From the sequence record OZ196212.1: 64,000 nt of DNA; one strand, written 5' to 3'. Made by a program: the position numbers and the translations under genes. Below, piece after piece: positions 3,225 to 30,146 of the stretch; the first letter of the stretch is position 1; every line of letters starts with the position of its first letter. The notes beneath the pieces were generated by a model, which searched no databases, was not told the origin of the DNA, and was given only the letters and a program-made list of their open reading frames with translations.

Positions 3225-3332
3225 CAAAAGCGCCTACGGGCGCTTTTTTTGTTTAGAATGCATCATTTCTGAAGTAAAATAAATGACGGGAGGTGTCAAT
3301 GACATACAAACAACAGCACATCGGGGCGATTA

Positions 3333-4065: not shown

Positions 4066-4359
4066 ATGAATGAAGTAACAACTTACACCGACACAAAAGA
4101 ACTAGCACTAGACATCGCAGCATACGCATCACTATTAGTTAAGATGGGATATTGCGAATGTGTTGAAAATCAAAAACTCTTTGTTGAAATGTGTAACGAA
4201 GCAGGGTTCAGAACAGTAACCGGAAAAGAATTTTCTCAAATGTCATTTCGACAGATGTTCGCTCGACTTCCAGCACGCATTAGTGAAGAAATTAAAGCAC
4301 AATTCTCATGGGGTAACAACGCACCAAATGAGTCTATTCTTGAAAGCGTTTACGTATAG
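4066..4359 (+). CDS. asiA: anti-sigma70 protein AsiA homolog
   Basis: ASLLVK/VENQKLF/NEAG/SFRQM align with T4 AsiA ASILIK/VENRANF/NEIG/SFRKI; lies convergent to the tail fibre block as in T4. Confidence 0.8.
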   Translation: MNEVTTYTDTKELALDIAAYASLLVKMGYCECVENQKLFVEMCNEAGFRTVTGKEFSQMSFRQMFARLPARISEEIKAQFSWGNNAPNESILESVYV

Positions 4360-14721: not shown

Positions 14722-15246
14722 CTATCTGCGTCCTTTAGTTTTGTTTCTTTTTAGTTTTCGTTTGAGCTTGCGAACTTCTTTACGCTTCGCGATTTTATCA
14801 GCTCGTCGAACCGCGTCATAATCCGCAGCACAAGACGCTGCAAACGCATCGGGCTTGAATACTGGCTCTTGACCCACATATCCGAAGATCGTGCCCTTAG
14901 CTTCGTTATACGCGACGCTAGACTTGTGTTTAGGGTCTGGGTTAATGTCAACGTGTACTTCAAAGCCGCGAGGGCCGCACATTGGCTTAACTTTCAACGC
15001 ACATTCACCTGCTTTGTATACTTCGTTCATCAAGCGGCTACGAATACCATCAGTAGATGACATATAGGCTTTCTCAGTTTCGATTGTTTTGAATACTTGA
15101 GCGCCTTTACTGCCTTCCAAGTGAATTATGATTACAGTCGCGTAACTGATCATATCACTTTTTCGTTTACTGTCACACCCAACATAGATCGTGCTACTCG
15201 GGTGACTATTTTGAATCGCTGTTTCTACAGCTTCCCAATCGAACAT
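14722..15246 (-). CDS. YkuK/DUF458-like RNase H-fold protein
   Basis: IYVGCDS...YATVIIIH...LMNEV...EVHVDIN...AASCAAD. Confidence 0.75.
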   Translation of the reverse strand: MFDWEAVETAIQNSHPSSTIYVGCDSKRKSDMISYATVIIIHLEGSKGAQVFKTIETEKAYMSSTDGIRSRLMNEVYKAGECALKVKPMCGPRGFEVHVDINPDPKHKSSVAYNEAKGTIFGYVGQEPVFKPDAFAASCAADYDAVRRADKIAKRKEVRKLKRKLKRNKTKGRR

Positions 15247-15295
15247 GTTTCACCTCGTTACAAAAAAGGGTAGCGACGTGCTACCCTCTGTGTAC

Positions 15296-16729
15296 TTATA
15301 AAGCGTATCGGTCGACACCGACAGTCTTCAGCATGATTTTCACTGGCTCAAGCTCACCACCCAACAGCGACGTTAGAATTGAAGGGCTGCAACCCGACAC
15401 TAACGCTGTGTTCGCTTCACCTGATTTAACAGGCACGTTGTCTAGACGACCACGCAAGTTCCAGAACACTAGTTGCGGCATTTCGTAGCCCGCGTTCGCA
15501 TACATGACTTTGATTGCATCGAAGTTCGTAGTGTTACGAGTATGCCAGCCACCGCCAGTACGAGCTTGATCGAATTCCATATCGCTCATGATAAGCAATT
15601 TGGTTGGCATTTCGTCTTGCGACAAGTTTGCCGTACGAGCGCGTTCAAGAAGAACTTCGAAGCATCGTGTGATGTTCGTGCTCATATCTTCGCCAGATCG
15701 TTGCATGTTGTCAAGACGCGACTTCAAGCTATCACCCGTCAACTTGTGAAAGTGCGGATCACTTGAGAACGAAATGAATTGATCTTTGAAGATACCCTCA
15801 TTACGTTCAGCGACGTAGATGCCAAGAGACATCGCAACTTCTTTACAAGTCACACTACCACCGTGTTCACCGTTGATACCACAGCCCATAGAGCCAGAAA
15901 CATCAACAACTGGAATCACGCGCTCGTCAGAGCCTTCCATGTAGTTCGGTAGAGCTTTCCATTGCTCATTTGCAACACGATGGTCACCCATTTTAACGCT
16001 GCGAACAACATCGTATGGGTAAACAGCACCTGCATTGATCTTCGCTTCACCTTTCACAAGCGATGTGATGTACTCACCGTATGCAGATTCAGCGTTACGA
16101 CCGAATGCTTTCTGATAGCGTGCAGACGCTACAGATGGCAGTTTGCCGAACTCGATCTCGCCCCAATTACGAGCACACATCTTCTGTTCAACAGTGTCAG
16201 ACAAAAGAGAGATCACTTTACGCCACTGCTTCGCGTTTACACCAATCGACTTGATTGTGCGCTTGAACACGACTGCGTTTTTGCTGCGCTCACGAGGAAA
16301 CCACTTAGCAGCAAGCGCGTTTTTGTCATTGACAATCGCGTGTGTCCACAGAGTGATAGCATCAGCTTCAAGAGAAGTACCGAACGCAGATACTAAGTCA
16401 TCGAAACGACCAAGTTCTGGGATCTTGCGCATAACTAGACGCGCTACTTCTGGTTGTTCTTTACACAGACGTGCAAAGATTTTGCGGAAAGTACCGCGCT
16501 CACCTGCACCGCCACGCACGTCGCGAGACCATAGCAAGATGCGAGTTGCAAGCTCAGGGTTTTCACCGAATGCGCGATTAAACGCAGTTAGTGACTGATC
16601 ATTACCGCGCATAGCGCCGATAGTGAAGAACAAGTTTAGACACTCGTTACCCGAAGTGCTGTGTGTTACTGCACCGTTTGCTGTACGTGAATCGTTAGAT
16701 TGCATAGCGTTCATAAATAAACTAGTCAT
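15296..16729 (-). CDS. DUF2828 plus vWA domain protein (TROVE/Ro60-like architecture)
   Basis: TANGAVTHSTSG..LNLFF, RDVRGGAGER, LAAKWFPRE, GAVYPYDVV, MIDAS DVSGSM and SDMEFD; ATG 16729 has a GGAG RBS. Confidence 0.85.
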   Translation of the reverse strand: MTSLFMNAMQSNDSRTANGAVTHSTSGNECLNLFFTIGAMRGNDQSLTAFNRAFGENPELATRILLWSRDVRGGAGERGTFRKIFARLCKEQPEVARLVMRKIPELGRFDDLVSAFGTSLEADAITLWTHAIVNDKNALAAKWFPRERSKNAVVFKRTIKSIGVNAKQWRKVISLLSDTVEQKMCARNWGEIEFGKLPSVASARYQKAFGRNAESAYGEYITSLVKGEAKINAGAVYPYDVVRSVKMGDHRVANEQWKALPNYMEGSDERVIPVVDVSGSMGCGINGEHGGSVTCKEVAMSLGIYVAERNEGIFKDQFISFSSDPHFHKLTGDSLKSRLDNMQRSGEDMSTNITRCFEVLLERARTANLSQDEMPTKLLIMSDMEFDQARTGGGWHTRNTTNFDAIKVMYANAGYEMPQLVFWNLRGRLDNVPVKSGEANTALVSGCSPSILTSLLGGELEPVKIMLKTVGVDRYAL

Positions 16730-16765
16730 TGCTGTAAGCTCCAAATATCAAGGATCAGAAAAATA

Positions 16766-17356
16766 ATGTTTCATATTGTATATCAAATAACAAATTTAAT
16801 AAACAACAAAATTTACGTCGGTAAGCATTCAACCGAAAACATTCATGACGAATACATGGGTTCGGGAAAGCTTTTGCTCAGAGCCATTAAAAAGTATGGC
16901 AAGGAGAATTTCACAAAAGACATACTGTTCGTATCATTAGACGAAAAGGATGCATATAAAGCAGAACATGAGATCGTGAATGAAGATTTTGTTCTCCGTG
17001 AAGACACATATAATCTCAAAGTTGGCGGTCTTGGTGGATCATCAGGAATAGAATCTCCATGCAAAGGTCGTCAACTGAGTGAAGATACTAAACTAAAAAT
17101 GAGAAAAAGTAAACAATTTTCTCAAAAACATTTAGATTATCTCTCAACTAAATTATCTGAGTACAACAAATCTAGACAAGGTGTTCAAAGAGACGATCTA
17201 AAGGGTAACTCAAACCCAATGCATCGAGGTAATTGGCATACACCCCACGGAATATTTGAAACATCAAGCGAAGCAGCGTGTGCCATAAAATGTAGTCAAT
17301 CAACAATTGTTAGACGTTGCAAAAATCCAAATTTTGAGGATTGGTACATCAAATAA
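16766..17356 (+). mobile_element. free-standing GIY-YIG homing endonuclease (Seg-like)
   Basis: IVYQITNLINNKIYVGKH...YMGSG; AT-rich; opposite orientation to its neighbours. Confidence 0.85.
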
Positions 17357-17665
17357 CTATCGTTGTCTGTGCAACGATGTGCCATTCTTATGAATTTCGA
17401 TCAGAATCGTGCCGCCAGTTTCGTAGTTCGTACGAACAGAACGATAGTCGTATTTCTCAAAGAAGTTGCGAATAATAGTCGCACCTTTCTTATCAGTATC
17501 GGTAAGATGCACATCAACTTTGATGCGAATCGGGAAATCTGCGTTATTCTTGACAGCCGCCATGAATTCGCGTTCGCACTGCTTAGTGTAGTGCTCAGAA
17601 AGAACGCGACGTTCTTCTAGCACTCGCTCTTCGATGTTTTTACGTAGCTCGTCATGTTTAATCAT
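17357..17665 (-). CDS. hypothetical protein
   Basis: MIKHDELRK start inside the track ORF. Confidence 0.65.
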   Translation of the reverse strand: MIKHDELRKNIEERVLEERRVLSEHYTKQCEREFMAAVKNNADFPIRIKVDVHLTDTDKKGATIIRNFFEKYDYRSVRTNYETGGTILIEIHKNGTSLHRQR

Positions 17666-17667
17666 AA

Positions 17668-17994
17668 TTAAGAACCGTGATTTTTGTTGATAGTTAGTGT
17701 AACGTATGAATACGAACAAGAATTGTATTCACGCGGGTCAGAATCAGTGCGACCGAACTCGGCAGTGAAGTTATTAAACCCCTCTTTGCGCATAAGCTCT
17801 TTGATGATCGTCATGAACTGCGAGTTTGCTTCTGTTTGACTCTTCAATGTCACTTGAACAGTCACAGGAAACGCATAGCCATTCACTGAGTTGATTCGTT
17901 TCTCGAACGATTTGCGCATATCGCGACCAAACTCTTCCATGCGAGTCGTCTTGTTGTTCTCAACGCGTTCGACTAGTTGTTCGTATAAACTCAT
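17668..17994 (-). CDS. hypothetical protein
   Basis: MSLYEQL start, tightly packed operon. Confidence 0.65.
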   Translation of the reverse strand: MSLYEQLVERVENNKTTRMEEFGRDMRKSFEKRINSVNGYAFPVTVQVTLKSQTEANSQFMTIIKELMRKEGFNNFTAEFGRTDSDPREYNSCSYSYVTLTINKNHGS

Positions 17995-17995
17995 A

Positions 17996-18295
17996 TTACA
18001 CCCCAAGAACATTTGGCAATTGCGAAATGGTATATGTGCTTTCTTGCACACGACCGCGAAACTTCACAAGCATACGATGACTGAAGTCGTCTGGGTGCTC
18101 ATCTAAAAGATCAGCATACTTCCACAAGCCACATTCATTGCGCATACTCTGACCGATTGAGTGATGATACACTGCTAAATCAGATTCATCAGCAAGAAAC
18201 GCTTCACGATGCTCTTTCGGAGTATCTTGCCAGATGCCTTTTAACCAACGCTGACAGTGCGCTTCTAAGATCTTTTTAACAATTGCAGTTTTCAT
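17996..18295 (-). CDS. hypothetical protein
   Basis: coupled ORF. Confidence 0.65.
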   Translation of the reverse strand: MKTAIVKKILEAHCQRWLKGIWQDTPKEHREAFLADESDLAVYHHSIGQSMRNECGLWKYADLLDEHPDDFSHRMLVKFRGRVQESTYTISQLPNVLGV

Positions 18296-20990: not shown

Positions 20991-21182
20991 CAGACATTCG
21001 TGAACAGTTTTAAAGTCTTTCGCATTAATCACATTTGACTTTCATGTTTAACGATACATGAATCCCTACCAACAAGTTGATAGTCGTACCTTCGAGTTTA
21101 TTGCTTTAAGTCACCGAGAATGCGGCTATGCGTTACTCTATCTCTTATTTAAGTTTTGTTAGTTGGTTGCTGTACAATGTCT
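20991..21182 (-). ncRNA. structured RNA closed by a CAGCAA-motif stem (element A)
   Basis: AGACATT-GTACAGCAA...ACG-AATGTCT-G; internal hairpins. Confidence 0.65.
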
Positions 21183-22604: not shown

Positions 22605-22608
22605 AAAG

Positions 22609-23045
22609 CAGATATTAACGTATTTAATCAGCACACGGGCTTGACACCACATTGTTTGTGGTCTACGTGAAGAACCTCTGCACAACAATCCCGCTCTAAT
22701 TGCGTTATGTGGTGACTGTCACGAGGAATCTAGTCTTCTTTAAGTGCCTTTCGGCTGTAATAAAGTACAGACAATAACGAAGTGTTTTTTCGTCTTTTAC
22801 ATAAATCGCAGTTGACTATCTTGTTACTCTAACAAGCAAGTATCGACTACCTCAGCGTCGCGCCTAGACTGTGTATTTCTACACGCCACATCTTTCGTTA
22901 CAAGTCTCGACCTAGCACGTTGTTGCTGTGCTGAACGTCTCGAACCCACGCTAAGACCTAATCATTGTTTTAGTAGATTAGTAGTTTGGTTGCTGCATAT
23001 TGTCTTACGTGACAGTCAAACACACAATGCCGAAACAATATGCCG
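22609..23045 (-). ncRNA. large nested structured RNA containing a YrlA-like module (element B, 22768-23005)
   Basis: AGACAATA/TATTGTCT stem with GCAGCAA; 10-bp inverted repeat 23008-23017/22714-22723; T-loop GGTTCGAG. Confidence 0.55.
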
Positions 23046-23100
23046 AGACGTTCACGCTCTTATTTTTCAAGTTCACACTATCGTAGTGACTCTCGTGATA

Positions 23101-26107: not shown

Positions 26108-26302
26108 ATTGTACATGATGTTTTCTTCGTTGTAAACATCTTTTTTGAAAAACTTTTCGTTCGTTTTCGAACGTTTAAATGCTTTTCTCTATTGTACATG
26201 ATGTTTTCGTCATTGTAAACATCTTTTTTTAAATCTTTTTGAATGACTTAACGTTTTTGTTTTAACACGTTAATCATATCACTCGTTTACGACTCGTTAA
26301 AC
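26108..26302 (-). promoter_or_regulatory. three tandem sigma70-like early promoters driving the left tRNA block
   Basis: TTTACA-N17-TACAAT at 26136-26108 and 26219-26191 with A-tract UP elements; TTTAAC-N17-TATGAT near 26300. Confidence 0.8.
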
Positions 26303-27085: not shown

Positions 27086-27200
27086 TGGCTGACCGATGCG
27101 GGACTCGAACCCACGACCACGTGCTTAACAGGCAATTAGAAATGCGGTAGCGATACTTATCAATATCATTTACGTGCTCTACCACTGAGCTAATCGGTCA
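27086..27200 (-). tRNA. tRNA-Asn(GTT)-like RNA with a 38-nt insertion in the anticodon stem
   Basis: D arm, intact CT-GTT-AA loop, T arm, GCCA; insert 27134-27171. Confidence 0.75.
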
Positions 27201-29089: not shown

Positions 29090-29105
29090 TGTTCACCTCT
29101 TAAAA

Positions 29106-29228
29106 TGGTGGAGAGTGCGGGATTCGAACCACGCGGCCAAAAGATTTACTTAGTTAGTGTTTGCAGCATGAATACTTGACAATATTCTGTCAACGTTCTT
29201 TTGCTCTACCAGACTGAGCTAACTCTCC
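29106..29228 (-). ncRNA. CCA-ended tRNA scaffold with motif insert in place of the anticodon loop (T1)
   Basis: GGAGAGT/ACTCTCC-A-CCA, D arm, AAAGA/TCTTT stem enclosing ~52 nt. Confidence 0.7.
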
Positions 29229-29234
29229 ATTTAA

Positions 29235-29374
29235 AACACATTGAGCAGGGTGCAGGATTCGAACCTGCGTCACGATCTTAGAATGATATGCTGTTTGGGT
29301 TGCTGAATACAAGCTATACAACTTGCGTTTATGCTACGTGTGCTAGCCACTACACCAACCCTGCTCAATGTGTT
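29235..29374 (-). ncRNA. tRNA mimic with 17-bp extended acceptor and motif insert (T2)
   Basis: D arm, T arm GCAGG-TTCGAAT-CCTGC, no CCA, ATTCAGCAACC. Confidence 0.75.
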
Positions 29375-29607: not shown

Positions 29608-29753
29608 TAGAGCATATTGGTCGTGCGTACTAGAATCGAACTAGTCCTACGATCTCCTAATGATATGCGTTATTGGTTGCTGAATACTTACTTGTCAGTA
29701 AGCGTTATGCTACGTGTGCTGCCACTACACCAACGCACGACCAATATGCTCTA
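29608..29753 (-). ncRNA. tRNA mimic with 21-bp extended acceptor and motif insert (T3)
   Basis: paralogous to T2; T arm ACTAG-TTCGATT-CTAGT. Confidence 0.75.
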
Positions 29754-30019: not shown

Positions 30020-30146
30020 TAATCTTAGCAGCTTTTTCGCTGAAGTCAAACACTTTTTTCAAATTTCTTTCATCGAATCAAGAGTTTGTGTTGCTGTCTC
30101 TCGACTCGATGAAATACATTCTACAGGAAAACAAAGCGAAGTCAAC
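30020..30146 (-). promoter_or_regulatory. two tandem sigma70-like promoters with a motif hairpin (30068-30114) between them
   Basis: TTGACT-N16-TAGAAT and TTGACT-N16-TAAGAT with A-rich UP elements. Confidence 0.7.

Follow-up and report, generated by a model that had tools for sequence, protein, structure and literature searches.

Why should the start codon of a phage gene for a putative RNA-binding protein overlap a heptamer, ACAGCAA, whose relatives occur in noncoding RNAs (ncRNAs) of the same genome? The question arises in a 64,000-nucleotide (nt) stretch of sequence record OZ196212.1 (the whole stretch is called the window below), which comes from a KVP40-like (schizo-T4) Vibrio phage. Over bases 15000–18000 it shows 100% identity with phage D491s and with several sister isolates. 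The gene (15296–16729, minus strand) encodes a protein of 477 amino acids with Pfam matches to DUF2828 and DUF7788/vWA and with the PHROG 850 annotation 'RNA-binding protein', and is called the Ro60-like gene here because of its predicted fold. A sequence-only reading of the interval 16725–16762 had taken the overlap for an operator, at which the protein represses its own translation and from which it is titrated by its ncRNA ligands. This interval is the 36-bp divergent spacer of a mobile Seg-like endonuclease cassette, and we cautiously favour the explanation that the cassette supplied the start site and that the heptamer is a relic of a longer native element, now acting as a spacer.

The start site and the cassette that carries it

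The observed start-site motif is real. Minus-strand positions 16746–16727 read TTTGGAGCTTACAGCAATG, the ATG at 16729–16727 is the start annotated in the identical phage D491s, and the GGAG Shine-Dalgarno sequence (16739–16742, minus strand) lies 9 nt 5' of it and is invariant in the cassette alleles of phages CZ01 and VH1_2019. The final A of ACAGCAA (16729–16735, minus strand) is the A of the start codon, and the heptamer spans positions −6 to +1, inside the ribosome-binding region of the gene's own mRNA. The sequence, the Shine-Dalgarno and the overlap geometry had all been described correctly on this strand. The window contains 22 copies of ACAGCAA against 12.1 expected, a count reached in 1 of 100 shuffles, and it is unlikely that the start-site motif arose by chance.

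The endonuclease insertion that had been suspected at this locus is also real, as can be seen from the alignment with cassette-free relatives and from Pfam. The cassette-specific segment of approx. 660 bp (16718–17379; alignment with K575 and KVP40) contains a gene for a protein of 196 amino acids (16766–17356, plus strand), divergent from the Ro60-like gene, that matches SegE_GIY-YIG (PF19835) with 26.7 bits (cut-off 25), GIY-YIG (PF01541) with 22.1 bits, just under the cut-off of 22.6, and PHROG 314 'homing endonuclease' with an E-value of 2e-47, and Seg-like relatives of which are present in many T4-like phages. Where the cassette stands, K575 and KVP40 have 132 bp; these hold the upstream gene's last codons, an early promoter of T4 type, a leader of circa 60 nt and the first three Ro60-like codons. 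The replacement is established by a presence/absence polymorphism at one locus in three pairs of near-identical genomes (96–99% identical): the K575 group, with flanks 99.4–99.5% identical to the window, lacks the endonuclease, and the other two pairs are VH1_2019 with the cassette and KVP40 without it (97.4% identical in the gene), and CZ01 with it and nt-1 without it (96.3% identical). The right-hand junction and the leader GGAGCTTACAGCAATGAC are common to all three cassette alleles (window, CZ01 and VH1_2019), while searches of IMG/VR and metagenomes with patterns anchored outside the motif gave no further cassette alleles. The N-terminus of the protein reads MTSLF in the window and MSAF in the native form, and the confidence of the AlphaFold model is low there.

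The feature in the window is therefore of a known type: a Seg-like endonuclease cassette that has brought a surrogate start site with it. Among T4-like phages, the freestanding Seg-type GIY-YIG homing endonucleases (SegA–G) share with it the GIY-YIG/SegE-like domain, the intergenic position, the presence or absence between near-identical phages and the flanks that differ between alleles. Unlike them, the gene is oriented against its neighbours, and the cassette takes the place of the downstream gene's promoter, leader and first codons and brings a substitute ribosome-binding site.

The 36-bp spacer (16730–16765), delimited by alignment and examined by folding, contains the ribosome-binding sites of both genes, that of the endonuclease being AAGGATCAG (16750–16758, plus strand), 11 nt 5' of the ATG at 16766. 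CTGATCC (16758–16752), which had been proposed as a weak partner stem of the motif, is the complement of GGATCAG in AAGGATCAG. Folding gives no stem, with a minimum free energy of the leader (−4.7 kcal/mol) weaker than that of 200 of 200 shuffles, and the pairing was discarded, since the heptad is the complement of the endonuclease ribosome-binding site and the leader is unfolded. Paralogous Seg-like genes can be aligned only from circa 9 nt 5' of the ATG, which rules out the motif as a conserved 5' untranslated region (UTR) of the endonuclease family.

The identity of the spacer between the window and CZ01 is 31 of 33 aligned positions, and between the window and VH1_2019 33 of 34 (94–97%), while in the same comparisons the endonuclease coding sequence is 77–80% and the Ro60-like gene 80–83% identical; the binomial tails for this excess are 0.02 and 0.003, from two comparisons that are not independent. 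Because its identity exceeds that of the adjacent coding sequence, we take the spacer to be under purifying selection.

On the gene strand, a search from 16.7 to 26 kb revealed no early-type promoter, and we therefore propose that the Ro60-like gene in the window is probably transcribed by read-through across the antisense endonuclease gene. A site at 16775–16804 (minus strand), antisense in the first codons of the endonuclease, reads GTTTAT-N18-TACAAT and resembles phage early promoters (compare GTTTACA-N17-TACAAT at 26219 and 26136); it may serve the Ro60-like gene as a weak substitute promoter, and it is conserved in CZ01 and VH1_2019, but overlaps conserved GIY-YIG codons. For the endonuclease, the sole late-promoter-like site nearby is CATAAATA (16712–16719, plus strand), which matches TATAAATA at 7 of 8 positions, lies 47 nt 5' of the endonuclease ATG and falls in Ro60-like codons 4–6. 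This A-rich octamer arises from cassette-specific codons and is kept in CZ01 and VH1_2019, while native alleles read CATAAATG there. We infer that CATAAATA may be the endonuclease promoter, in which case the Ro60-like initiation region would be covered exactly, in antisense, by a late transcript starting there. At the other end of the cassette (17357–17379), the endonuclease gene meets the upstream gene tail to tail with zero spacer; the last circa 8 codons of the latter are cassette-specific and form a 7-bp hairpin (17378–17359), which resembles a weak terminator.

The native leader and its 15-nt element

The native leaders of nine cassette-free KVP40-like phages contain the invariant GACATTWTACAGCA, a block of 14 nt with ACAGCA at its end; the next base is A in eight phages and T in the ninth, F86. 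Conservation of the native element is thereby established. The block lies downstream of an early promoter, GTTTAC-N17-TATAAT; in K575 and KVP40 this promoter has 16–17 nt between the two hexamers and is preceded by an A-rich tract. The whole 15-nt element occupies positions −35 to −21 and the heptamer −27 to −21, 5' of a GAGGAA Shine-Dalgarno; the overlap of motif and AUG is thus a property of the window and not of the native leaders, where the element sits circa 20 nt upstream. The expectation that ortholog leaders share the motif gave a mixed result. ACAGCA is invariant in the nine leaders of the KVP40 group, but ACAGCAA is absent within 110 nt in all 49 distant leaders scanned (49 distinct leaders from IMG/VR, of orthologs 41–54% identical), so that the absence from ortholog leaders which had been named as speaking against autorepression is not seen inside the KVP40 group and is seen outside it.

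The leader in the window is not native. It is cassette-borne and retains only TTACAGCAAT of the native element, a 10-mer that the cassette leader and the KVP40-type leaders have in common (chance circa 0.002–0.005, by our own estimate), and both leader alleles retain TACAGCAA within 30 nt of the AUG. The cassette (circa 16718–17379) has displaced the T4-type early promoter and 5' leader of the native gene together with the first three Ro60-like codons, and it supplies GGAG-N9-ATG as a surrogate translation start. In the explanation that we favour, the ACAGCAA of the window would be the truncated 3' part (TTACAGCAAT) of the 15-nt element GACAWTNTACAGCAA, and in its present position the heptamer would most likely be only an unstructured spacer between Shine-Dalgarno and AUG, presumably with no operator role.

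The element was searched for with the degenerate pattern GACAWTNTNCWGCAA, allowing at most one mismatch. In KVP40, nt-1 and F86 there are exactly three matches per 18-kb region from the Ro60-like gene to the tRNA cluster, in the Ro60-like leader, 11 nt after tRNA-Ser and between tRNA-Arg and tRNA-Met, all on the gene strand and all noncoding; 50 kb of KVP40 elsewhere gave zero matches. The window retains the two tRNA-cluster sites, namely GACATTGTACAGCAA (21167–21181, minus strand), 11 nt 3' of tRNA-Ser(GCT) and with orthologous copies in KVP40, nt-1 and F86, and GACAATATGCAGCAA (22990–23004, minus strand) in a noncoding stretch of circa 500 nt between tRNA-Arg and tRNA-Met, while the leader site was lost to the cassette. 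By its sequence, the conserved 15-nt element links the native Ro60-like leader to tRNA-cluster transcripts, and this is a more interesting result than the start-site overlap itself, lying outside the interval to which attention had been drawn.

A looser core, TWCRGCAAY, is present in 12 copies in the window, where 5.45 would be expected, and 12 of 12 are on the minus strand. Seven of them, including the start-codon copy, lie within 16.7–29.7 kb, and the core is enriched circa six-fold in this 13-kb region from the Ro60-like gene to the tRNA cluster. The strand bias extends to five copies in coding regions, whose genes run either way. Among the matches listed, a scan of IMG/VR for the 15-mer gave scattered single matches only and was uninformative. 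RNA complementary to the motif (UUGCUGUA, or UUGCAGUA in F86) was not found in noncoding regions. A MotA-type middle or sigma-70 promoter was considered for the element and rejected on inspection, with no consistent −10 at the right spacing. In F86 (L094, 4060 and 5713) both tRNA-cluster copies read ACTGCAA, with the same A-to-T change, and the leader copy reads ACAGCAT instead; the shared change could be a parallel one or could come from gene conversion between the two sites.

As for its origin, tRNA genes can be aligned with the native promoter and leader over their T-arm, acceptor 3' end and trailer. In KVP40 the spacer of the promoter agrees with the tRNA-Thr T-arm at 15/15 positions and the leader with the tRNA-Ser trailer at 18/21, with scores of 30 and 27 against a shuffled mean of 19.8 (standard deviation 2.4). 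Because these matches exceed those of shuffled sequences, the native leader looks like an exapted tRNA 3' half with its trailer, in which the 15-nt element would be a trailer element, and the native promoter seems to be built on a tRNA remnant. The native promoter spacer (L003, circa 4275–4305, and L002, circa 3270–3305, both native alleles) is also an inverted repeat, maintained by compensatory changes in five lineages, and is absent from the window.

The Ro60-like protein and its candidate RNA partners

The Ro60 fold of the protein is established at the level of the predicted structure. The AlphaFold model from 37 homologues reached a predicted local distance difference test score (pLDDT) of 85.3 and a predicted TM-score (pTM) of 0.85, and Foldseek matched it over its full length, with 510–570 aligned columns, to Ro60/TROVE structures: the TROVE crystal structure 9kop (E-value 8.8e-10), Xenopus Ro60 1yvr (E-value 6e-8, TM-score 0.63) and the Ro60 of Thermus phage phiLo, 9l5y (E-value 2e-7). 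The model contains the ring of HEAT-like repeats and the C-terminal vWA domain with its metal-ion-dependent adhesion site (MIDAS), whose DxSxS residues (D276, S278 and S280) are invariant. At the sequence level TROVE was not reached, since Pfam gives DUF2828 and DUF7788 only, vWA_Ro60 has an E-value of 0.11, and a profile search against the PDB reaches TROVE chains only at an E-value of 0.8. Because the model matches Ro60/TROVE over its full length, it is plausible that the protein binds RNA.

The family is widespread, as tblastn with the Ro60-like protein matched 711 phage records; in the DUF2828 literature nothing relevant to phages was found. Phage Ro60/TROVE proteins with tRNA-like partners have already been described (PMC4201824, PMC7824862), and the bacterial Ro60 (Rsr) is reported to recognize GNCGAAN0-1G, a motif that resembles the vertebrate Ro60 contact GGUCCGA (PMC4201824). 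The motif GNCGAAN0-1G is absent at the site studied here. An RNase H-like gene (PF04308/DUF458; 14722–15246, minus strand) lies directly 3' of the Ro60-like gene in KVP40-like phages, and no such neighbour of DUF2828 was found in six distant loci outside them.

The four RNAs that may be partners of the Ro60-like protein are tRNA-like and lie on the minus strand: one (29236–29372) with an extended anticodon arm carrying UAUUCAGCAACC, its paralogue (29612–29752), and two related RNAs (29105–29228 and 27086–27199). The equivalents of all four in KVP40 are annotated as pseudo-tRNAs. They have normal acceptor, D and T arms, and an extension of 40–65 nt replaces the anticodon loop; in it, a small hairpin that shows compensatory changes in a comparison of four phages precedes a single-stranded segment, UAUUCAGCAACC or UGUACGGCAAUC. 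The claim that the start site carries the motif of an RNA family holds in so far as related motifs are present in these ncRNAs of the tRNA cluster, but what these RNAs conserve is the core CNGCAAY, whose variable position is A, G or U, and not ACAGCAA. As to a possible mimicry of the protein's RNA ligand, the site is linked to the tRNA-like RNAs by this core and by a resemblance of the form GACA...UAUNCAGCAA, and the leader itself is unstructured.

Two other regions may be mentioned here. A perfect 17-bp hairpin at 30062–30114 (minus strand; z-score −6.3), 3' of an early-type promoter at 30145, has a 13-nt loop, ACAGCAACACAAA, the counterpart of which in F86 is AUAGCAACACAAA. The stretch of circa 500 nt between tRNA-Met and tRNA-Arg (22605–23100, minus strand) has no convincing open reading frame, is predicted to form a 10-bp closing stem with a long internal hairpin and tRNA-like fragments, and is poorly conserved with KVP40 except for the 15-nt element.

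Ro60 (Rsr) forms ribonucleoproteins with Y RNA or YrlA, and the locus resembles this system in the predicted HEAT-repeat ring and vWA domain with MIDAS and in the tRNA-like RNAs encoded nearby. It differs in that Pfam TROVE is not matched, GNCGAAN0-1G is not seen, and the best match to Rfam YrlA (RF02553) in the window scores 28.2 bits, below the gathering threshold of 69, in an alignment that bridges two adjacent tRNA-like genes with many non-canonical pairs and poor stems. The topology is also opposite to that of YrlA, as in the tRNA-like RNAs here the acceptor ends stay open and it is the anticodon arm that is extended. YrlA-like RNAs, still sub-threshold at 38–39 bits, lie 75–600 nt upstream of DUF2828 orthologs in two metagenomic phage contigs unrelated to each other (L051, 2315–2425; L068, 1807–1907), which supports a Ro-like/Y-like RNA module beyond KVP40-like phages. 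Permuted (alpha-type) transfer-messenger RNA (tmRNA) genes lie upstream of DUF2828 orthologs in two more contigs (L084, 934–1268; L076, 273–615).

Weighing the explanations

Descent of the heptamer from the native element ranks first among the explanations, ahead of an operator, a function for the endonuclease, a processing signal and chance. Several points weigh against it. The spacer is more conserved than its coding flanks, so that some constraint acts there, and constraint on the heptamer is inseparable from that on the two ribosome-binding sites, with three lineages only to compare. The 10-nt identity TTACAGCAAT could reflect selection for function rather than descent, and if the alignment is anchored on the ATG, ACAGCAATG is paired with native CAACAATG, so that derivation of the heptamer from the element is not the unique solution.

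If the heptamer were an operator, the Ro60-like protein would bind ACAGCAA at its own ribosome-binding site and repress translation, and the tRNA-like RNAs would titrate it, much as ThrRS acts on the thrS leader. The Ro60 fold found by Foldseek is consistent with this, as are the 14-nt block ending in ACAGCA in nine native leaders, the related motifs in conserved single-stranded segments of four tRNA-like RNAs beside a covarying hairpin, the six-fold enrichment of the core between the gene and the tRNA cluster, the 10-mer TTACAGCAAT common to cassette and KVP40-type leaders, the presence of TTACAGCAAT or TACAGCAA within 30 nt of the AUG in both leader alleles, and the YrlA-like RNAs adjoining DUF2828 orthologs in other phage contigs. 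We nevertheless consider it unlikely. The motif is found in 0 of 49 distant-ortholog leaders; the two alleles place the element differently, 5' of the Shine-Dalgarno in native leaders and directly against the AUG, with GACATT missing, in the cassette; the F86 sites do not co-vary (ACTGCAA twice in the tRNA cluster, ACAGCAT in the leader); the core of the tRNA-like RNAs varies (A, G or U in CNGCAAY); and folding gives no helix like the Ro-binding stem of Y RNAs. Viable phages in three backgrounds have, moreover, exchanged the whole native promoter and leader. To our knowledge, no autoregulation by Ro60 is known, which also counts against an operator. The reported bacterial Ro60 (Rsr) motif, GNCGAAN0-1G, is a different one (PMC4201824). 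Autorepression is, on the sequences compared, possible but unsupported.

Autogenous operators that mimic an RNA ligand (E. coli ThrRS on thrS; T4 gp32, gp43 and RegA) resemble the locus in the T4-like phage context and in a motif common to putative ligand RNAs within the ribosome footprint of the protein's own mRNA, and RegA sites are likewise unstructured. Here, in contrast, structural mimicry is absent and the position of the motif differs between the two alleles. The motif is not of the A/U-rich RegA type, for which the consensus from systematic evolution of ligands by exponential enrichment (SELEX) is AAAAUUGUUAUGUAA (PMC3014915). A bolder version, which we regard as equally improbable, would have the Ro60-fold protein controlled through the 15-nt single-stranded GACAWTNTACAGCAA in its own early leader, copying the motif of its tRNA-like, Y-RNA-like partners and of tRNA-cluster transcripts in an autogenous, ligand-titrated circuit, with repeated exchange of this leader, through the cassette, for a surrogate in which only the UUACAGCAAU core is left, now against the AUG.

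The conserved spacer might instead serve the endonuclease. The complement of the motif would then lie in the 5' UTR of a late mRNA starting from CATAAATA, and the divergent, overlapping transcripts would regulate each other as cis-antisense RNAs. The distance of 47 nt between CATAAATA and the ATG is like that of exact TATAAATA sites upstream of late genes of the window, the octamer was created by cassette codons and retained in CZ01 and VH1_2019, and the constraint on the spacer would fit such a role. The first base of CATAAATA, however, mismatches the late consensus, and Seg-like paralogues are similar only from about −9, which leaves no conserved 5' UTR; we judge this explanation no more probable than the operator.

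Less probable again is pure coincidence, in which the start-codon ACAGCAA would be unrelated to the 15-nt element or to the ncRNAs. In its favour, the 7-mer is present 22 times in 64 kb, in an ATG-anchored alignment one substitution and one insertion turn native CAACAATG into CAGCAATG, and a similar 10-nt match, GCTTACAGCA, exists to the unrelated leader of contig L051 (chance circa 0.1, by our own estimate). Set against this, the chance of a match to the core pattern in one 30-nt initiation region is, also by our own estimate, roughly 0.001–0.01, the extended element stands in the native leader of the same gene, and 10 nt are identical with KVP40-type leaders. The least probable of these explanations is that the 15-nt element and its remnant form an RNA-processing or stability signal for a host or phage endoribonuclease (e.g., of RNase E type, AC|AUU) in tRNA trailers and early leaders, rather than a site for the Ro60-like protein. 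One copy does lie 11 nt past the 3' end of tRNA-Ser, an alignment of the native promoter and leader with a tRNA T-arm/acceptor end and trailer exists (including 15/15 for the tRNA-Thr T-arm), and it is as a linear sequence that the element is conserved where its surroundings are otherwise unrelated, but most tRNA trailers lack it, and the GACAUU half, the part agreeing with the RNase E consensus, is missing from the remnant in the window.

If the motif is only a relic, as we favour, the locus is an ordinary case of a Seg-like cassette that rewires the start of a neighbour's gene, and even then it provides natural allele pairs in three phage backgrounds. If, on the other hand, the 15-nt element were truly recognized, it would be the first cis-element to be connected with a phage Ro60-like protein and a direct handle on what these widespread proteins bind, for which the pairs of cassette-bearing and cassette-free phages would be ready-made controls.

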